64,000 bases of DNA from assembly GCA_030704615.1 (NCBI GenBank), contig CM060732.1, positions 70,742,001-70,806,000 on the forward strand. Reading direction: 5' to 3'. The notes under the pieces are model-generated. The model had not been told where the DNA came from. It saw nothing but the letters and a program-made list of their open reading frames with translations, and ran no database searches. Made by a program: the position numbers and the translations under genes. This DNA is from Takakia lepidozioides (taxonomy: Eukaryota > Plantae > Bryophyta). Below are positions 9,802 through 55,250 of the stretch, in pieces. Each line of letters opens with the position of its first letter. The stretch's first letter is position 1.

Positions 9802-10795
9802 TAGTTAGTAGCTCAGTTGGTTAAGTGCACTGGGTGCCACCCAGACGATTTTGGGGTCAAAACCAGTGTTGGACCGGTATCATCAATATTTCATACCAAC
9901 CAGTGTATGGTATTGTCGGTGAAGAGGCCTCCCTCATACTTGGCAGGTAATGGTATCAAGGTAGGTATTAAGCTTTTAATGTACCAGTCTGGTATGTATA
10001 TTGTTTTTGTTTGGCCTGGTATGGTATGGTATCAGTATTTCAAATTTCAAAACTTATACTAGGGGTATATCAATACTGGTATCAATACAGATTTTTTTTA
10101 TTTTAAATTAAAAAATAAAAATCTGTCCAAATTATACCTTCACTTCAGTAGCTGAAGTGATCACCTCAGCGGCTGAGTGCCGCAATTCATAATAACAAGG
10201 AGCTGGATCTCACCTTAGGTAATTTGAGGTCACCTTATAAGAGCCATATTACAGGCTGATAAATGAGACAATGCTCCAAGCCTAAGCAGATTTTTGAATG
10301 GCAAAATCAGAGCCCCCAAAATCGCCATTCAGATCGTCTCAATCAAAGAGCCGCAACTCTCCATTGCTGCACCCTAAATCCCTAACGCTCCACATATTGA
10401 TACCTAGGGTTCAAGTGACAGCGGAAGACATAGTACTGGTATCAACAAAATTGCGTTCCTTGTGATACCCAGGCTGGTCTGGTAGGAGCCCAGGTATTAG
10501 CGTTATACTATATTGCCCCCAATATGTTCTACCCGGGGTATTGCCAGTTGTTTATACCCGCCTGGTCTGGTACCCTGATGCAATACCCTTACCTGTGCTG
10601 ATACCCCGCCTCACCCCCATATACCTGTCCAACACTGGTCAAAACCTGTTACTTGACGGGTGTGGTGTATCCCCCCCTCCCTTCCGGGGTGTCCCATTTC
10701 TCAGCCTCCATGGTGCGGGTACTATGAAAGAGGTTATTTTCTCCTCTCACTATCAAGGGGCCTGATTTGTGAGCTGTCACTCCCAGGTGTTTCCC
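9802..10795 (+). mobile_element. SINE family A interrupted by a hAT MITE
   Basis: Head tagctcagttggttaagtgcactgggtgccacccag...ggggtcaaaac (9808-9863) resumes at 10638 and ends in the family tail at ~10795. Confidence 0.8.
9864..10637. mobile_element. hAT-type MITE (CAGTGTTGGAC TIR, perfect 8-bp TSD GTCAAAAC)
   Basis: gtcaaaac|cagtgttggac ... gtccaacactg|gtcaaaac; many internal ggtat/atacc subterminal motifs. Confidence 0.9.
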
Positions 10796-12632: not shown

Positions 12633-13141
12633 CCGTGTTAGACCGGTATACGTGGTCAGACCTGGGTATGTAGTAAAGGTATGAATAATGGCATACCCGA
12701 CTGTGCCGCTCAAGTGACAACCTCCTCAGGTGTCAAACTTGAGCCGCTGAAGTGGGAAACTGGTAATTGGTGAGAAAACTCAAGAACTGGTTAGCTCATA
12801 TATGTCTTTCAATGTTGTTTCATGAACCTTTCAGTGTACTATTTCTATGTGCTTTATGACATATCTCAATATGTATGAAGAGCTTGTGTAACATTTCTGA
12901 TTTGGTATGAAGAGCAGTAGAAGTATCATACCAATGTTCATATATCCCTAGTATGGATATTAAAAAATTCAAAACCAATACCATACTCATCTACAGTACA
13001 TTTTACATGTCCTCTTACCCTATTGATACCATTGATACACAGCTACTAGGTGATACCTGCCACCATACCATCACCAGGGATGGGATCCTCCATACCAGGA
13101 CCAGTCTGGTATTTAAAAATACATAACCTGGTCCAACACTG
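12633..13141. mobile_element. hAT-type MITE, same family as 9864-10637
   Basis: ccgtgttagaccggtat ... ggtccaacactg; flanks ggtataaac / ggcataaac. Confidence 0.7.
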
Positions 13142-42697: not shown

Positions 42698-45600
42698 CTC
42701 CATACACATACACTTGAGTTGCATCAGATAGCACTTCATAGATCTATCCCACCTTTCCGACGAATAATTCAGATTAAAACTTTACACACGATGAGGAGGA
42801 TCAGTGTTTGTTTTTTCATTTTCCAAAACGCCAGAGGGCCGACATGTGACTCATCCACCCAGCACCCATCACCTTTTTTTTCTTTTTTTTTTGAAACGGG
42901 ACAGAGGCCCTTTTAATCAAATTAAATTAAACAAAGGTTCACAAAAGGTGGAAAAAATAACCACCTAGGGAGGCCGTGGAGGCTAACAGAGGGGGAACTT
43001 CCCCATTACCCTAGCAAACCTGCTAAGCAGAAGGGGAGAGAGAGAGAGGTGTAGAAAAGGAACAGTAAGAGGAAAGTCCAGGCAGTCCAAAAGCAACCTG
43101 GAACTAAGCAAGGAGAGAGGGGGCCTTTACGCAAGGTAAGGAAGATGGACATTTAAGCAGCATTCTAAAGCGTAAATCATGGAGAATCGAAGCTGCGAAG
43201 GAGGTGAGGGAGGTGAGGCCTCGAAGCAGAGCTTAAAATCAAAACTTGAGCGGAGTTCTGGATTTAGTGTCTCTAGCTCACTTATGAGGCCAATTGAATT
43301 CTGATTCCTCCCCGTCACCAGGGGACCTCCCATTGCGGGGGGATGGATTGTTGCCAGGTAAAGCGAGTGTTGGAAACACCGGAGCCGAGCACGTTGCTTT
43401 TTCCCCATGAATCATAGAAGTCTTGAAGCAACTTCCGCCCCCGTTGCTCCGAAGTTCTGGGAAGAGCTGCAATGCGACCACTCACTCGTATGCCGGGGGC
43501 TCCTCGGCCTCGATCCCAACTTGTTCCTCCCCCTGCTCCTTCTCGGATTTTTCCTCATCCTCCGAGGATGCCTCTTCCTCTTTCGGTAGACGTTCAGTAA
43601 ACCATGCTTTCCTCCCCTCAGTAAGCAGATCATGGTAAGTATGAAATAATATTGATCTGCCTCTGGGGAGTTTCTCCTCGAAAACCCAAGCACATAAGCA
43701 GAAGCAGAGATTGGGGAGGAGGGTTTGGAAAGATGTCCCAGTGAGAGTAGAAACTGATGACCAAACTCCAGATTTTGTTTGACATATTGCAGCAGTATTC
43801 AATAATCTTCGCTGTTCCACATCAGGGTGCTGGACAGCCTCGGAAACCCCAACCCCATGCCTCCTCCGGGTTTGGAAGCTCAATGGGCTCATCAAGAAAC
43901 TCTAACCTGGTTTCTCAAATGCCCCTTGACTGATCTGCAATTTGACCCGGCGGAGTGGAGGTGGATGGATAAGAAAAAAACACCATTTTCTTCCTATTAT
44001 GTCAAGAAAGGTTATGCTCTCATCAACCCCTCGCGCTCGTTCAAAAACAGGTGGTCCAGCAAATGGGGTAGCCTGCAACTTGGCCAGAACACATGGAACA
44101 ACATCTGGAAAGACATATGGAGGAAGGACAGACCATCCAAGCTATCAGGTTTCCTTTGGAAGCTCGCACATAGGATCCTCCCTGTCAGACAGAAGACGCA
44201 TGAGGATGATCCAACATGCACTCTCTGTCATGAAAACCCAAAATCTTCATACACCATTGCCTCACTCATGAACTGACCATCCAACCGCATATTGGCAATG
44301 TGAGTGCAACCCTGGTCTCGGGGTTTGGGTAAGTAGAATTCCAGAGTCCATGTTGTAGTTGGCAGACAAAGGTTGCCGCAAGCATTCTTGCTTGTTTGCT
44401 GGCATTCTTTGTGTGAGATTGCCTCTCATGCAATGCCATGCTTTCCAGATGGACTGCCAGGGTCTGGAGCCCAATGAGACTGCGGCGTTTATGCCTTGAA
44501 CTATCCATCAGCGTAGTGATTGAGCCTAGAGATAAGGGTGATAAGCCCTATCCCTATATTTTTTTTGGAAAATGAGGGTGATAAGCCCTTGCGACATCTG
44601 TGAGGGCATCATCTTCCTCTGCAGAATGTCAATCGCCATCATTAGGAAGTCCTCACCAATAGCTAGCCACAATGCCTTGAACAGCTCAATCGGAAGTCCG
44701 TCTAGACCAGGCGATTTGTGAGAAGCCATGGAGTTCAATGCTTGTCCCAATTCCCTAGCAGTGAAAGGGGCCGCCAGGCTGGCTTTATCCGGCTGAGAGA
44801 GAGAACACGGAATGTGATGTAACAGGGTTTTAGTGGTTGCCCTCCTCTGCTTTGTTGACTGCTGCCTTTCAAACAGATTGTGAAAATAACTTGCAGCCAT
44901 TGATGCCATGATTTTTGGTCTGTCAATGGTTTGACCTGCTGAGTCTTTCAGAGCTGGAACCAGCATTGCGGCTCATCTTTGCGTTGCCTTTACAAAGAAA
45001 TACTTGGTCATCTTTTCTCCTTTAAGGGACCAATTCACCCCAGCCCTGGTCTTCATGAATTGCTCTCTGGCGTTTAGCAACATAGAGAGGTTCTTCTTAG
45101 CTGTTTTGTAAGAAACCATAGTCTGAGGGCCCTCCTGTTTGGACTGCAATTGGAACTGACATACCTGCAAGCACTTTGTCAGAGCTTTCAGCCTTCTGCC
45201 GTTTTCCACTGCTTTTTCCTTCAAGATGTGTTTACACATGTTTCTCAGCATGTCCAGCTTTTCCAGGAATCGCACTGTGGGGGAGGGGCAAGGGATAACC
45301 GCCGAGGTCCATGCCTTCTGCAGGGCTGTAACCACTTCTGGGTCTTGGAGAATAGACGGATTCATTTTGAAGAAACCTCTTCCCTTCAACCTATACCCTG
45401 GAGCACTAAGAAGCATGTGAATAGCTGCATGATCAAACTCCGATAAAAATGGTTGCAGTGGGATGCTCTTGGTCCAAGCCAGCAGAGTAGGTGAGCAATA
45501 AAATCTATCCAAGCGCGCCTGGCACAGATTAGGCGGGTCCCTGTTGTTGCTCCAAGAGAATTTCAGGTCACCCTGCCGTGGAGCAGTTGCATCAAGGAGA

Positions 45601-48600
45601 CCCACAGTGAAACACATCGCATCCCAGGAGTTCTTTTCCGCTGTGGAGAGCCCATGAGCTTACCTTCCCAGCCTATCTGTCTCCTCTCCCACCATGTTGA
45701 AGTCTCCTCCCATGAGCCAGTGTTGGATGTGCGGGTGCTGCAACATTTTGTCCCTGATCTGATTCCAAAAAAGAACTCTTTCCTCCTCCCCATTGGGGGC
45801 ATAGGTATGTAGCCCTACCTCACCAATAGAGATTGACCCAGATTCATAGCTAGAAACTGGACTCTACCCTGGATCCAGATGGCGTTGGAAGTGATGGAAT
45901 CATGGAGAGAAGAAGATACAAGAATAGTTGTGCCGCCTCTTGAATCTATCACCGTGGGGTTCCAAAATGTAGTGGCAGAGGGCCATAGGGAAGCACCTAA
46001 GGAGGCAATTTTGTGTTGATCTAACTTGTGTTCTTGCAGAAATAGCAGATTAGAACCCCTAACAAATGTGGAGGCCCAGCTCCTAACTCTGGCCCTTTTG
46101 GGGGCAGAGTGGTGGGAGCCTAGGCCCCGCACATTCCAAGAGCATAGGGATAGATTCATTTGGGGGAGATAGAAAGGCCCGTGTATTCTACACGATTTGA
46201 TGGCCAGATGGGGTCAAAGAAGAACTTAGTGCGCTTATCCAACATGGGCAGAGTGGAAACCCATTTGAAACCTTTAAGCGAGTGAGGTATAGCTGGAAGC
46301 TGCCAGGTAAACACTGTTTTGGCACGTTTCCTTTTGCTTTTGCAATTTAAAGGCATGAATTAGTTTCCACTGTCCCTGCGAACTGAGAAAAGATTTGCAG
46401 AGATGTTGCAGGATAAAGTTTGTGACAGAAAGAGGAGGGCAGAAGGGGAAGAAGGGAGGACAGAAGTATCCCACCAGCCTGGGAGAACTCGCTGGGAAGA
46501 GGGATGGCTGTCTAACATTAGGGTGCAGACCCTTTTCTAGTTGCAGCATGAGGTACGTAAAAAATGAGGGGAGAGGAGGAGCATGCGAGTCCATGCTTAC
46601 CGGGGGTGGGGAGTCGCCCTCCGGAAGCAGGAATGTGATGGAGTGATCTGCAGCTGCATTGGAGGAGAAATTGAAGTTGGTGTTGCCCACCAGCACCAAT
46701 TCTCTATTTAAATTGGTTCTTGCTGGGGTACTGCGACATCCTTCATCTTGTGCATCTGGTAGTGCTCGTCCACCAGCCCAATCCCTTCCTCGAAATTTTT
46801 TCTGCTGCGAGCCCATTCCGTGGGGTCCTTAACCCTGTAAGACAGATAATACTTACACACCCATAGCCATGAGTCATGAGCACCTGATGTGTCTAGATCC
46901 GACCCGCAAATAATCGGCAGCACATGAATTATTGCCAAATCTGCATGAGATTCATTGTTCTCCACCATGATTCCAACATGTTGTATGTGCGACAAAAAGA
47001 GATTCGGGTTAGGAAAGAATTCTTGGAGAACGCCTTTTGAAAGTGCGAGCGTGATGTCTCTTTCTTTCCCCACCCCATACTGGAGCGCCATGGCTTCAGT
47101 CACCCATGCTGATTGAAATCCTTGCTTGATACTTGGCAAAAAGAAATTCGTGTAGTCATCAATGAAGGCATACAACAAAGGGGTGATGCAAGATTGCTAC
47201 CTTTTCCCTTGCGTAATTGGATCCAGGTGCCCAACCTGTGAGTGGTCTGCTTTTGAAAGAGTGCAACTCCAAGAATGAGACTGCCAGGCTGGTACCATCC
47301 AGCTGCTGCAGGTCCGCTTCAGTGAAGGGAAATGACCCCCATGCCTCCATTATTCTCACCGGGAAGAAGCCCGATCCAGTTGGACCCTTGGGGATGATTG
47401 CAGGCGCGGGGTTTGCATGTCGCTTTCTCTTCTTTGTAGCTTATATGTCTCCAACGGCGTGCTCATTTGATTCAGTTGCAGCAGCTACCTGTGTGAACTG
47501 GTTTTGACCTCCTGTCGAGGTTTTTTCCAAGGGCTGTGAAGATGCCTCATCTTTCCTTAAGGCCCTGTTTTTTGGGCAATCTGCCTTAACATGGCCTTCC
47601 GCATTGCAAAGGAAGCAGATGATGGAGAGGGCCTCTTCTTTAACAGTACACAGATGTAAGAGTCATCGAGTGTAGGCAGTTCAATGGAAGAGCCAATGGA
47701 GGCATTCTCTGGCATGAGGACAACGATCTTTGGGACGCCATTATCAGAATTATGCTCGTGGTGTATGACCTCCGTATCCACACTAAGGATTTGGACTTGA
47801 GCTGGCTCATAGATATTGATGGCCCCAATGAAGGATCCAAAACTTGCTCCAATTTCTGGTAATGAAGTGAGGTACGTAGGCGGGAGGAAAGGGATGGCGA
47901 TCACCCTTGGTTTCCTGAGTATGCATTTTTTGTGCCCCCAGTCATGGGTCCAAGGGAAGATGACGACCTTGGTTGAGGATAGGTGGGCATTGAAATTCAG
48001 TGCTTTGTCCACGTCCGTGGAGGAGGAGAACAAGATTGCGTAGAACCCCTTGTCCATAGGAAGGCAGAAGTGATGTGCCAGACCCCCGTCCACTCCCTGG
48101 GGGGTGCACTCTTTATAAAATGTCCGTATCATGTGCGTTCGCCGCCTAATAAAAAAACCCCCTGTATACGGGTCCTTGGATCATTTATACCCCCTCTGTA
48201 CATACATTTTGAAGATTATAAAACCCCCTCCTGTAAATATATAGAAATTTGTAATTTTTAAAAAATACCCCCTTCTGTATGTATATTTCTTTTTTCAATA
48301 ATTAAAAAATACCCTCAAATATGTATATGTATGTTTTTAATATTATATCAAGTTTATTCATTTAAAAATAGAATAAAATCTAATAAATTCATTAAAAAAA
48401 TTGTTTGCCCTCGATAAAACTTGTTGTGGAATCTCACTTTGAACAATAATCAAATGCCGAGAGGAAAGGGACATTGTCAATGCCCTATGTGCAAGAGGCC
48501 TGAAGAAAGTTTCTATTTTCTGATATGCAGTCCTAGGTATTTCATCAGAGAGTGACCCTCTTGAAGACCAAGACCTAGTCACTGCACTTCTATTCATCAA

Positions 48601-49774
48601 CTAGGACAGTTTCTGAACTTGTTCTACAGTTTCAACCTTCGCAAGGTCCAATTATGTTCAAAACCTACTGTTGAGAATTCCTCTCCAAAAAGAGATTTCG
48701 TGCGCCACTGTTGGAGTCCAACCTGACTCGCAGTTGACAGAGTTCAATACATTCAATTAGATGACAAGCATTTCATTTCACCAATACTCCCCACAAGAAC
48801 AAACACCATTTTGGAAGTGGTGAAAGCGGTTTGCATCCCGTACAACAATCTCTTGCTTAGCTATCTTTGAGATGAATTTGGTGGCTGTGTGGCAATCACC
48901 ACACATCCGAAGATTCTTGATGGTCCCTAAAGACATCCCAGAGGGTGTGTTGATAAGCCCAAAAACAATGGCCAGCTTCTCATTGTGGTGGCAAAGAGAC
49001 GATTCTTTAAGCTCTTCATCAACATCATGCAATGCAAAGTGCGGGCTTCACCCCTTCGCACATCATTTGCTCATAGGTCTCCAAAGCCTCCATCCCGCGC
49101 CCTTGCTGTGCATATCCTGCAATCATAGCACTCCACAACAACACATCTCATTTAGCCATACCGTCGAACACTCCCTTCATACATGTCCACGAGGGTACTG
49201 TTCAAAATGACATTTGATACAATTGCAGACCTAACAATGTCGCCATGGACCTCTTTGCCCTTTTCCAAAGCTGACAGACTTACACACGCATTGCAAATGT
49301 ACACAAACGTGATGTGGTCGGGTTTCACCCCTTCCCCCATCATTTGATCATAGGTCTCCAAAGCCTCCATACCACATCCCTGCTGTGCATACCCTGCAAG
49401 CATCGCACTCCACGACACCACATCTCGTTCAGCCATGGAAACTCCCTTCGCATCCTTAATGCACCCACATTTGGCATACATGTCCACCAAGGGAGTGTTC
49501 AGAATGACATCTGGTACAATTCAAGCTTTGACAATGTCACCATGGACCTCTTTCCCCTTTTCCAGAGCTCCCAGGCTTGCACACGCATTGCATCCTGCTA
49601 ACATTATATTCCATGTGATCAAAGATCGTTGAGGCATTCTGTTGAACACTTGGTGAGCATCAATGATGCTCCCGCACATAACATACATGTTGACAAGGGT
49701 GTTGAGAAGAAAAACATTTGACGTGAATCCACTTTGGGTGATGTGAGTATGCACCTGTTTTCCAACTTTCAGAC

Positions 49775-50279
49775 CAGTGTTGGACTGGTATCAAGTTTTT
49801 TACATACCAAACTGGTCCTGGTACCAGGCGTATCACAAAACTTTCATACCAGTCTGGTCTCTATAATGGTGGATGTTTTTTTTCCAGATACTGGTATGAA
49901 TATGAGTATCATGACCACAATACCAGCTGGTATGAGATATCAACTCTGGTATCATTCCAAAGCCATCTTGAGTTACAAATTTGTCAAGTGGCAAGTATCA
50001 AGTGAAAACAAATAAAATATACATAAGAAGTAAATATACATAAGTACGAATATATAGGCATATGTACACATAAATTAATTCAGTATACATACCAGAGTAA
50101 ATGAGGAAGACGATGGGGGAGTACGGGTATTGTGGCTGGTATGAAAGAACTGATACCAGCCTGGTCTGGTATCTGACCAAGTATTCTCCCAAATGATACT
50201 AGACTGGTCTGGTATCTAATACTAGTGCATATACCAGTATTATGTACCAAACCTTCACCTATATACCAGTCCAACACTG
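49775..50279. mobile_element. hAT MITE inserted into a PPR motif
   Basis: tttcagac|cagtgttggactggtat ... ataccagtccaacactg|ttccagac; the joined flanks match the uninterrupted paralogous segment at 50860-50910. Confidence 0.85.
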
Positions 50280-52699
50280 TTCCAGACCTTCCATCTTAAT
50301 GCACTTAAGCAAGAGACAGACATACATATCTGAATCTGGTGAAATGCCTTGTGATGTGGTTAGGCTTAACCCCTTCCCCCATCATTTGCTCATAGGTCTC
50401 CAAAGCCTCCATCCCGTGCCCCTGTTGTGCATACCCTGCAAGCATCACGTTCCACGACACCACATCTCGTTCAGCCAGAGTGTTGAAAACTCCCCTCACA
50501 TCCTTAACGCACCCACATTTGGCAAACATGTCCACAAGGGCAGAGTTCAAGATGACATCTGGTACAATTCCAGCTTGCACCCAGGCTTTCACACGCATTG
50601 CAAACACAAACAAATGTGATGTGGTTGGGCTTCACTGCTTCACACATCATTTGCTCATATGTCTCCAAAACATTCCTACCACACCTATGCTTGGTAAATC
50701 CTTTCAACATAATATTCCACGTGATCAAAGATCATTGAGGCATTCTGTTGAACACTTGGTGAGCATCCCTGATGTTCCGGCACTTAACATACAGGTTGAC
50801 AAGGGTGTTGAGTATAAAAACATTTCGCGTGAATCCACTTTGGATAATGTGAGTGTGCACCTGCTTTCTAGCTTTGAGACCGTCCATCTTGATGCACTTA
50901 AGCAAGAGACAAACACATATTTGAATCTGCTGAAATGCCTCCTTGGTTTAGAGTCTGTAGAGCCTCTGTCAGGCTGTTGCTTAAAGTATCTTCACACGCC
51001 CAGAGGTGCCAGAAGAGGCATTGTGGACTCCCTCTCTTGATCCTCTTTCAGAAGCTGTGGTCATGGTTGAGGTGCCTGATTTTATCAACTGTGCCGCTGC
51101 AGCTACTGCCTTTAGTTGACAATCTACCCATGCAGGTTTCTTATAGCTACTGACCCCCACATGGAATCAAGGTAATCTGGAGCTTGAAGTCCAACCCTCT
51201 TGGATGAATCTGGACCCACACTCTATCCATGCTCATTCAGGAAAAAATAGGGAAAAACTCTGATAACAGGGAAAAACGGGCTGAAATGTGTTGAAGAAGG
51301 TACCTTCATTAGCAGCGCCTTATTCTATCAAATGCACCGCTGCCGCTGCTGTTTCCAGTTGACCATCTACCCACGCAGCTTTCTTGTAGCTATTGATCCG
51401 CAGGGAATCAGAAGTAATCTTGTGTTTAAAATCGACCTCTTGGATGAATCATGTTCCACGACACCACCTTGTTCAGTCATAGTGTTGAACACTCCCTCCG
51501 CATCCTCAATGCTCCCACAATGGCATACATGTCCACAAGGGTATTGTTAATAATCAGATCTGGTACAATTCCAGCTTTGGTGATGCAACCATGCACCTCT
51601 TTGCCCTTTTCCAGGGCTGCAGGCTTGCACACGCACTGCAAACGCACACAAACATGATGTGGTCGAGCTTCACCCCTTCCCCCATCATCTGCTTTCAGGT
51701 CTCCAAAGCCCCATCTCGCGCTCCTGCTCTGCACACCCTGCAAGCATCACGTTCCACGACACCACATCTCATTCAGCCATAGTGTTGAACACTCCCTTGG
51801 CATCCTCAATGCTCCCACATTTGGCATACATGGCCACCAGAGCAATGTTCAGGATGACAAATTTTGGTACAATTGCAGATTTGATGAAGTCACTAGGGAT
51901 CTCTTTGTTTTTTTCCAGGGCTGCCATACACACTGCAAACTTACACAAACGTTATGTCGGCGGCCTTCACCCCTTCCCCCATCATTTGCTCAAAGGTTGG
52001 AGCCTCCATCCCGCACCCCTGCTGTGCATACCCTGCAAGTATTGCACTCCACAACACCACATCTCGTTCAGCCATAGAGTTGAACACTGGTCCCTTATCC
52101 TCGATGCACCCACATTTGGCTACATGTCCACCAGGGCAGGGGCAGTGTTCAGAATGACATCTGGTAATCTGATAGGCATTCACCTTTTTGCCTCGGTTGT
52201 CCCACCATTGTCTGGGGTCAGAAAAATATTCATTCCACAACTTCTCCTCGTCTTTGTTACCTGTTTCTGGATACTTTCCGGTTGTCACATTGGCAGTATC
52301 ATGTCAAAGTCATTCCAAACTATCCTAGATTCACTCAACCAGCTAACTTGCATAATTCAACATGAAAATTTAGGGCCAATTCTGATAGGAGGGGAAAACA
52401 GGGTGAAATGTGTTACAGAAGGTGCCTTCATCAGCAGAGCCTGATTTTATCAATTGTGCCGCTACTGCAATCTGAAGACAATATTCATTTTCTGATACAC
52501 TGTCCGGGGTTCTCTCATTGATAACAGGTGTACGTTGAAGGTTGCAATGACCAAAAGTGCTTCTAATAGAGTCCCACATCAATTCAATCTCAAAGAAGTT
52601 CATCCCTTGACTGGCTGGAGAGCGGTCTTACACATTGGTGATTCAATGGGGCGCTCTAGGAAGACAACCAAGGGCAAGGACTTCAACTGTAGGTGACCA

Positions 52700-52861
52700 A
52701 GTGCAGTGGACTCGTGAGAAATCCCAAACCCTAAACGTTCCATTGTGGACTATATCATAATGGACAAAAATTTGTTCCCCCGGTGTGCCAATGTGTTGAT
52801 CGACAGAACTGATATTGGTACCTCTGACCACTTCCTGGTTTGGACTGAGATCAAAAGATGA
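52700..52861 (+). mobile_element. LINE AP-endonuclease fragment
   Basis: SIVDYIIMDKNLFPRCANVLIDRTDIGTSDHFLVWTEIK (DY...SDH C-terminal EN motifs). Confidence 0.7.
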
Positions 52862-55250
52862 CCTCTTGTGTGTGCATACTTGTCTGTAGCCAGGTAACGA
52901 CGGATTGGTCAGTGAGAACCACCACGGTGCAGTTGAGCACGGCCTGCTTAGAACAAGCTGACTCTCCCAAGAACCTTGTAAACATATGGAAGAATACCAA
53001 ATCAGGTACTAACAGGAGGCAAGAGCCCGCAATAGCAGGATGGAAAAAAATCTTCACATCGTACCTTAAGAAAACGCCACACCTTGCAATTGCAGTTGTC
53101 CCACCATTGTCAATCTTCTAAAAACTCATGTCAGGTCTGCACAGTGCTGCAAATTCAGGGCCGACTCTGTTGAGAGGGCAAGACAGGCTGAAATAGATCG
53201 AAGAAGAAGGTGCCCTCACCACATTGTCCTTGACCTTGTGTCATGACCCATGGAGGATTTGCCCTCCCATCAACCCAAAAGGATCACTTCCCTAAACTCT
53301 CCCCTAAACCTTGTAAACATCAGGAAGAATACCATGCCCTGTGGAGAGGAGGGGAGAGGAGAGGAGAGAAAAGAGAAAGCCCGTGGAAGGGAAGGCGAAC
53401 GCGGGAGAGGAGTGGAGAGGAGATGAGAGGAGGAGAGGGAAAAGAGAAAACGGCGGGAGGGAAGGGGAGAAAGATCGCGGAGAGAAAAAAAAAAAAAAAA
53501 AAAACAAACAAAGATTTGATCCCGCAGTGCATCGCGGCCAAAACGTCACTCTTACCACTACACTTCCCCTTAAAATACAACAACCCCCTCCTGTAAAATT
53601 ATATTTAAGGTGTTTTAAACCCCCCTCTGTATGTATAATGTTGTACATGGGGGGGTTTAAAATACCCCCTCCTGTGCACGCACGTGGCTGGTACATTTAA
53701 TGAGGAGTGCACCCCCCAGGGTCCGCTCCCACATGTTGCAGAATCCATCTTCTTATCCAGACTCTAATGTGAGGCATACCAGGAAAGTAAACCAAAATTC
53801 CCGATTTGGTCAGCTTTTGAGCTTGCGCTTGCATTTTGGCTTTGTCAAGTTTGATAACCTGCTGATCTGTCTCCGCCTGGACCACCGTGTCTTCCCAGCA
53901 AGCTTTTGTAGGCATGGGTGATGGAGGTGGGTCGTTGTACGCAGGTCCCTTGCCAAGGATGGAGGCGCCAGAGGTCTGAACGGTGGAATTCTTCTTTGTC
54001 CAGATCTGGGATTTGCTTCTGCCCGCTGAAGACGCACCTCCGCGCTTCCCCTGCTTCGAGCTACATCCCCTGGAGTCCATGAGCACTACTACATGGAGGC
54101 GAGGATTAGTGAGTGTCAACTTTAGCAGCGAGATTGGAGTAGAAGGGTAGAGAAGAAGAGGAGAGAATGTCAATTAGAGATGTAGCACTAGCTGGAGGAG
54201 CGCTTAAGAAGTTTTTTCAGTGAGAGGAGAAGCTGCAGACATTCCAAGCAGGCAATGTAAAATAGCAGCAAGAGGGGGCAGATAGTAGAGGAAGTGGGTG
54301 CTTGACGCTTGATGCAATTTGAGTATGACAGAACGCTGTAAATGACAATAGCATCACGGGAGACATAGAATGTAAATGGTTTTGATGACTTCCATGGCAA
54401 ACGAATGCGCAAAGGCGGCTACGCATCTTCGCAATATTGTCCCTCTTCTTTTCTGCTAGTGTTAATAAAGAGAAATTGCATTGCCGCAGCCTTGGGAATC
54501 AAAGTGAGCCAGCATAGAGTGTGAAGCGCCAAGATGCTAGAAGGATGTTGGCAGAGGGGGGAAATGCGCCGTAGTATGCATGTCGGCTCATTAACGATTC
54601 TTAAGGGGCGGGAGAATGGAGCGAGATGATGGGTTAGAGAACTCAGGGTCACTGGGGGAACATTCCTTGAAGAAGCGGGGGTGCTTTCAACAGAAGTAGA
54701 ATGAAAGAGATGGAGAATGATGCTGGGAAAAGATGAATGTTGTCACCCATCTGGAGTGGCAGGGTTAGAAAAAGTGGCAAGCAGCTGACCCATTTCTCAG
54801 GTCGAATTCTGGCTATTTTTTGCTAGGAAAAAAACTTCTCAGCCACTCTCACCCCCTCTTCATAAATTTAAAAAAAAAAAACACTAAGGAGGATACCTGT
54901 TAGCACTGTGGATGAAAAATGTTGGGACAATCTTCATGTCTCAAGCTGGAATGGGGTCATCCACTTCTAAGAATATTCGTTGTAGAGAAGAGCAATTAAG
55001 AGCCATAATCTTAGTTAACTTAGCAAGCAGTATATATAGGTTGTGGATGGTCATCCAAGATACCGTACTTGGCAGGCTGATCCGGCAGTGAAGTGCAACT
55101 TCTTCTTTACAACAAAACACGTCGACACAACTTAAAGAAATTTCTAGATTTTACGGCAATGCCAAGAGGAGATTTTAAGTAATTCGGCGGTGACTCCCTG
55201 CATGAACTTGCTCTATCTACTGTACCAGATGTGGTAAGAGAATTATGTAC

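Follow-up and report, generated by a model that had tools for sequence, protein, structure and literature searches.

A probable Pack-type transposon with a broken PDF-PPR-DYW cargo in a decayed LINE of the moss Takakia lepidozioides

The window analyzed here is a 64-kb stretch of DNA (64,000 nucleotides) from the moss Takakia lepidozioides (contig CM060732.1, positions 70,742,001 to 70,806,000), and all coordinates below are counted within it. It contains a 5,625-bp block at 48096-53720 that is bounded by terminal inverted repeats (TIRs) and interrupts open reading frame 1 (ORF1) of what appears to be a decayed long interspersed nuclear element (LINE). The interior of the block resembles genes for organelle RNA-editing factors that combine a PDF motif, pentatricopeptide repeats (PPRs) and a DYW deaminase domain. 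Very probably, the block is a non-autonomous Pack-type TIR transposon with a broken PDF-PPR-DYW cargo, inserted as one block into LINE ORF1. The ends of the element are organized as follows.

48088-48095, left copy of the target site duplication (TSD), GTCCACTC, matching the right copy at 7 of 8 positions
48096-48111, plus strand, left TIR, 16 bp and perfect, CCTGGGGGGTGCACTC
48112-48350, plus strand, left subterminal region, AT-rich, with 3-5 copies of a ACCCCCTCCTGTA-like motif
53580-53704, plus strand, right subterminal region, with 3-4 copies of the motif, a hairpin of 23 nt being formed by two of them
53705-53720, minus strand, right TIR, 16 bp and perfect, CCTGGGGGGTGCACTC
53721-53728, right copy of the TSD, GTCCGCTC, matching the left copy at 7 of 8 positions

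An initial annotation, made from the sequence alone, had proposed perfect 16-bp TIRs, a 7/8 TSD and subterminal repeats at both ends, and the three proposals hold. The TIRs agree at 16 of 16 positions. Their sequence occurs exactly twice in the window, in mutually inverted orientation, and two matches were reached in none of 100 dinucleotide-preserving shuffles. Past the TIRs, the ends are still about 80% alike up to 44 nt. The TSD lies directly outside the TIRs and is 8 bp long with one mismatch. The subterminal pattern CCCCC(N1-2)CTGT has six distinct sites no more than about 200 bp from the element ends and nine matches in the whole window, where about one is expected by chance. The motif copies at both ends all lie on the plus strand and are not mirrored, and one further, inverted copy gives rise to a 23-nt hairpin near the right end.

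The orientation of the subterminal motif bears on one variant of the proposed origin. In a macro-transposition, the outer ends of two small elements of the same family, flanking a decayed PPR-DYW locus, would have been used together. A motif in plus orientation at both ends is what two co-oriented copies would leave, and the mobilization of DNA between neighboring co-oriented elements has been proposed as a means of Pack-TYPE acquisition (PMC8903248, PMC6379663). Such an event would nevertheless have to account for the inner TIR copies, which are not left inside the element: no second pair of this TIR was found there, the sequence occurring only at the two ends. We regard macro-transposition as highly improbable, and it would in any case be a variant of cargo acquisition and not another kind of element.

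The interrupted LINE lies on both sides of the block. Its recognizable parts are listed below.

44529-46213, minus strand, decayed LINE ORF2, with an APE-type endonuclease and the start of a reverse transcriptase
47444-48095, minus strand, downstream half of LINE ORF1, with a frameshift and, beyond it, a terminal CCHC zinc knuckle
53721-54173, minus strand, upstream half of LINE ORF1, in a frame continuous with the downstream half once the element is removed

When the element and one TSD copy are removed, a single open minus-strand frame runs over the junction (...WILQHVG-[A/V]D-GGLAHHFCLPMDKGFY...). The frame of the joined ORF1 was checked by script, and its halves were searched separately. 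The zinc knuckle scores 24.7 bits with zf-CCHC, above the cut-off of 20.8. The in-frame rejoining of ORF1 and the insertion of a TIR element without transposase into it, both claimed in the initial annotation, are upheld by these results. Support for the rest of the LINE is weak. Exo_endo_phos matches ORF2 in two collinear pieces, both below threshold (19.8 and 12.6 bits; profile positions 1-85, then 119-162), and only by eye could the C-terminus of the endonuclease and the beginning of an L1-type reverse transcriptase be recognized. The nearest protein-atlas clusters of the ORF1 half are plant DUF4283/zf-CCHC proteins (0.84-0.88), which is a lead only. It is therefore reasonable, with weak endonuclease and reverse transcriptase support, to regard the target as ORF1 of a decayed LINE. 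The L1-like LINE as a whole spans 44529-47662 and 53721-54173 on the minus strand and breaks off near 44500; the window holds no paralogous LINE copy usable as an empty site.

All recognizable coding sequence in the element lies on the minus strand. The pieces of the cargo were searched one by one, without reading through stops, and are arranged as follows.

48361-48780, minus strand, sequence 3' of the DYW stop, resembling a 3' untranslated region, with no Pfam match and a longest A run of 6
48781-49047, minus strand, C-terminal part of the DYW deaminase (PF14432, 1.8e-38, profile positions 10-93 of 93)
49028-49790, minus strand, PPR array fragment 3, in several frames
49775-50279, nested hAT-type miniature inverted-repeat transposable element (MITE), 505 bp, with a perfect 17-bp TIR CAGTGTTGGACTGGTAT and an 8-bp TSD TTTCAGAC/TTCCAGAC
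50284-50947, minus strand, feature block of PPR array fragment 2 plus the pre-PPR leader duplicate (Pfam, internal repeats)
51047-50308, minus strand, pre-PPR leader and second PPR array
from 50381, minus strand, pre-PPR leader duplicate, interrupted by the MITE
50984-51448, minus strand, two tandem relics of the second half of the PDF motif (VDFKHKIT..., LDFKLQIT...) with the downstream AAAQLIKSG segment
51455-52166, minus strand, PPR array fragment 1, 2.3 PLS-type units of 295 bp that are 78% alike
52178-52303, minus strand, first half of the PDF motif, KLWNEYFSDPRQWWDNRGKKVN, joined to the central part of a PPR motif
52361-52627, minus strand, a further copy of the post-PDF segment (...AAQLIKSG...), from internal repeats
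53005-53283, minus strand, decayed relics of PDF cassettes (QWWDN at 53109; WVD...EGTFF at 53283-53158), by eye only
53340-53512, GA/CT-rich low-complexity stretch with a 20-nt A run on the plus strand (a T run on the sense strand of the cargo)

By our own tally, recognizable PDF, PPR or DYW sequence makes up about 59% of the 5,625 bp, while the nested MITE takes up 9% and the termini about 9%. Together with the DYW match, the PPR_2 matches in ORFs of the element (down to 7e-13 in Pfam) and a PDF match at 7.6e-13, this agrees with the earlier description of the interior as mostly PPR, DYW and PDF sequence. The DYW piece retains the HxE and CxDCH zinc ligands and a terminal EYW. The piece adjoins a PPR motif directly and lacks the E1, E2 and PG-box region. 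Internal duplications across the cargo are 75-89% identical. Identity is 84-89% between higher-order copies, which recur at a spacing of 1.05-1.3 kb, and about 77% between neighboring PLS-type units. This pattern fits a block of about 1.1 kb that may have been duplicated in tandem, or a donor that had several cassettes, with later decay.

The PDF motif has no Pfam model, and its 45-residue first half was run in one full HMMER scan. The scan gave 89 matches at E<=1e-3, the lowest E-value being 7.6e-13, and many of them have 2-10 repeated stretches; a word search with the same half gave no match within that search's length range. One HMMER match, OSB3 of Chenopodium quinoa, combines an SSB domain with four PDF stretches. 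The matches also include PPR proteins with an N-terminal PDF from Adiantum (KAI5061374.1) and Sphagnum jensenii (CAK9868833.1), and a 1,371-residue ORF from a Logan contig, in which three PDF stretches occur together with a PPR array and an E motif. The occurrence of an OSB-type PDF motif, which binds single-stranded DNA, in 1-3 copies at the N-terminus of PPR proteins of a fern, a moss and the Logan-contig ORF is a side observation; PPR fusions are not mentioned in PMC13393729 and PMC6963530, which deal with OSB proteins.

The Sphagnum protein provides a reference for the order of the pieces. The first half of the PDF motif in the cargo is 71% identical to residues 55-78 of CAK9868833.1 (1e-11), and a relic of the second half is 37% identical to residues 83-112 (1e-5). 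The two halves are contiguous in the Sphagnum protein but are split in the cargo by a PPR array, about 750 bp apart, so rearrangement of the cargo is evident. Near 52180, the PDF|PPR junction lies where the 'YPDF' of a PDF motif and the 'VPDV' of a PPR would have CCAGAT in common, which would fit a microhomology junction. The 'AAG|GTGAAT' after the first PDF half was considered as the border of a retained intron and was rejected. It is coding, as judged from KVNVNYPDF in the Sphagnum protein and from other PPR units, and the coding stretch is followed by the illegitimate PDF|PPR junction. The blocks as such are those of PLS-class PPR-DYW factors with an N-terminal OSB-type PDF (KAI5061374.1, CAK9868833.1), namely PDF, PLS-type PPR and DYW. 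In contrast to these proteins, the cargo is not a gene and has its blocks in a disturbed order, cut short and interrupted by many stops.

As a gene, this copy is dead. The three sense frames of the cargo have 54-62 stops each in 1,500 codons, and the longest recognizable sense stretch is 122 codons. No continuous frame with a PPR array, E1, E2 and a complete DYW including the PG box, as in a functional editing factor, was found in the element. The cargo cannot encode an editing factor because of the stops in each frame, the missing E1/E2/PG-box region and the split PDF halves. The absence of a transposase, also part of the initial annotation, is borne out: no transposase Pfam family appeared at E<=0.1 among 20 ORFs on both strands, very decayed remains being possible.

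It had been suggested that the element spreads and recombines working editing factors or yields small interfering RNAs (siRNAs) against PPR-DYW genes. The zinc ligands kept in the DYW tail would agree with such a function, and so would the observation that PPR duplicates in Takakia are mostly dispersed with 'limited retroposition features', which leaves room for a DNA route (PMC13386178). The copy itself supports neither part of the suggestion. More than 50 stops in every frame, the absence of the E1/E2/PG-box region and the scrambled PDF halves speak against the spread of editing factors. As for siRNAs, the longest inverted repeat inside the element is 30 nt at 73%, so the element does not hold a hairpin siRNA precursor; no long inverted duplication able to yield one was found within it. 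We consider either function extremely improbable.

A further question is whether the cargo traveled with the element. Alternatively, a small empty TIR element could have landed in the LINE first, and PPR-DYW sequence could have entered it later by retroposition or within another mobile element. The 20-nt A run at 53486-53505 might be read as a trace of such an event, except that it is on the plus strand, opposite the sense strand of the cargo, and lies 5' of the cargo. The tail of a minus-strand cargo would be expected on the other strand and at the other end. There is no poly-A at the 3' end of the cargo, where the longest A run is 6. A TSD of the cargo's own was not found either: the only direct repeats of at least 10 bp common to both end regions are the subterminal motif, and the two 9-mers common to the border regions of the cargo are at chance level (about 1.5 expected by our own estimate from the region lengths). 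The cargo is moreover a rearranged mosaic, unlike an mRNA copy. The initial annotation had named later entry of the cargo, with its own TSD or poly-A, as the case against transport by the element, and neither mark was found in this copy. Later entry is accordingly very unlikely. With no poly-A, no TSD of the cargo and no inner TIR pair, the cargo most likely moved with the element as one unit, as far as the sequence of a single locus can indicate.

The stretch that carries the A run lies just inside the right subterminal region. It consists of GGAGA repeats, with two 55-nt copies that are 76% alike, and could be a small, plus-oriented retroposed insert or plain low complexity. Next to it, tRNA-like sequence at 53506-53560 (minus strand) was considered and dropped, as ARAGORN and Rfam gave no match.

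The element has the features by which Pack-TYPE transposons are described: TIRs with a flanking TSD, no transposase coding capacity and homology to host protein-coding genes inside. The Pack-type description of the initial annotation is thereby sustained. In rice and maize, Pack-TYPE transposons are a well-documented kind of element, with members among MULE, CACTA, hAT, PIF and Mariner (PMC8903248, PMC6379663). The element resembles them as a non-autonomous TIR element with a TSD and host gene fragments, which in Pack-TYPE elements are often rearranged and non-coding as well. It differs in that its host is a seed-free plant, in that its cargo derives from one gene family and consists of partial, diverged copies that stand in tandem and share one orientation, and not of fragments of several unrelated genes, and in that it is known from a single copy. 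In the packFinder survey, Pack-TYPE denotes a cluster with the same termini, and singletons are discarded (PMC8903248). The capture and shuffling of genes by TIR elements had been put forward as an unrecognized route; this does not hold, as the process is already established for Pack-MULE, Pack-CACTA and Pack-hAT elements (PMC8903248, PMC6379663). Relative to these, only the type of cargo and the host lineage are unusual.

The superfamily of the element can be narrowed by its ends. A TIR of hAT elements is short, about 10-25 bp, and usually starts with (C/T)A(A/G)NG. The element resembles non-autonomous, Ds-like hAT elements in its 8-bp TSD, its 16-bp TIR and the short motifs that recur within 200 bp of its ends, as they do in Ac/Ds. 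Three hAT-type MITEs with 8-bp TSDs are present in the window, the nested one among them, and hAT-type transposition therefore occurred in this genome. However, the TIR of the element starts with CCTGG, its TSD fits the nTnnnnAn preference at position 2 only, and no hAT transposase is linked to it. The nested MITE, by comparison, starts with CAGTG. Because of its CCTGG start, the element was not filed as hAT; it is hAT-like by TSD length, short TIR and subterminal repeats, a resemblance of sequence that leaves membership unproven. Mutator-like elements (Pack-MULEs) have TSDs of 9-11 bp and TIRs of about 100 bp or more. An 8-bp TSD and the lack of a long TIR make Mutator membership less likely, the ends being perfect over 16 bp and about 80% alike only to 44 nt.

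A plausible history combines these features. DNA copied from a PDF-PPR-DYW gene for an organelle RNA-editing factor, presumably captured at the DNA level, occupies the place of a transposase gene. The cargo is at present a co-oriented mosaic of 3-4 partial, diverged copies of the 5' part of the gene (PDF cassettes and PLS-type PPR units) and one DYW tail, its pieces joined by illegitimate junctions, with the hAT MITE among them and many stops throughout. A transposase supplied in trans would recognize the 16-bp TIRs and the repeated subterminal motif and would put the whole 5,625-bp block into LINE ORF1, creating the 8-bp target duplication.

Several points weigh against this reading. One copy was examined, and the presence of the cargo at the time of transposition, like the existence of further family members, is unproven. 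Neither a donor gene nor an autonomous partner was identified, and the window holds no such partner. Capture at the DNA level is deduced only from the missing marks of a retrocopy and the rearranged layout; a clear retained intron was not found in the cargo. The start of the TIR with CCTGG, in place of the YARNG usual for hAT, also belongs here. Searches for relatives were negative within their scope: no second copy of the element was found in the 64-kb window, its 28-nt terminal pattern had 0 matches in a metagenome scan, an exact look-up of 10 ORFs of the element and its flanks in a collection of 15 billion proteins gave no match, and a word search with the DYW tail revealed no sister copy, its best match being 73% identical.

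Hornworts, lycophytes and Takakia have thousands of PPR-DYW editing factors, whose spread is attributed to retroposition. A 2026 survey counted 2,016 PPR genes in Takakia, mostly dispersed duplicates, and attributed the expansion to retroposition, yet reported limited retroposition features in this species (PMC13386178). In light of these limited features, the idea of a DNA route addresses a real gap. An element that moved 3-4 kb of PDF-PPR-DYW DNA would mean that such a genome has a route at the DNA level. A single dead copy indicates that PPR-DYW DNA can be carried; working genes or siRNAs do not follow from that, and the copy says nothing on how often a DNA route gave working genes. The genes being so numerous, PPR genes may also be captured in mere proportion to their abundance. 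It is possible, although very unlikely, that a transposase-less hAT-like family in this early-diverging moss repeatedly copied PDF-PPR-DYW DNA genome-wide, and that some dispersed, intron-bearing PPR-DYW genes, for which the 2026 survey found no explanation in retroposition, descend from it. If so, the editing-factor family would in fact have expanded and shuffled its modules by DNA transposition as well.

Two minor observations concern the interior of the element. The C/D-box snoRNA family snoZ163 weakly matches 48554-48648 on the minus strand, 3' of the DYW stop (24.1 bits against a gathering score of 39, E 0.056), probably by chance. The nested MITE has an empty site in the uninterrupted paralogous unit at 50690-50950. 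Its relatives in the window lie at 9864-10637, with a perfect TSD GTCAAAAC, and at about 12633-13141, with the TSD G[T/C]ATAAAC. The family is characterized by 17-bp TIRs near CAGTGTTGGACYGGTAT, 8-bp TSDs, an interior rich in GGTAT/ATACC and a length of 505-774 bp.

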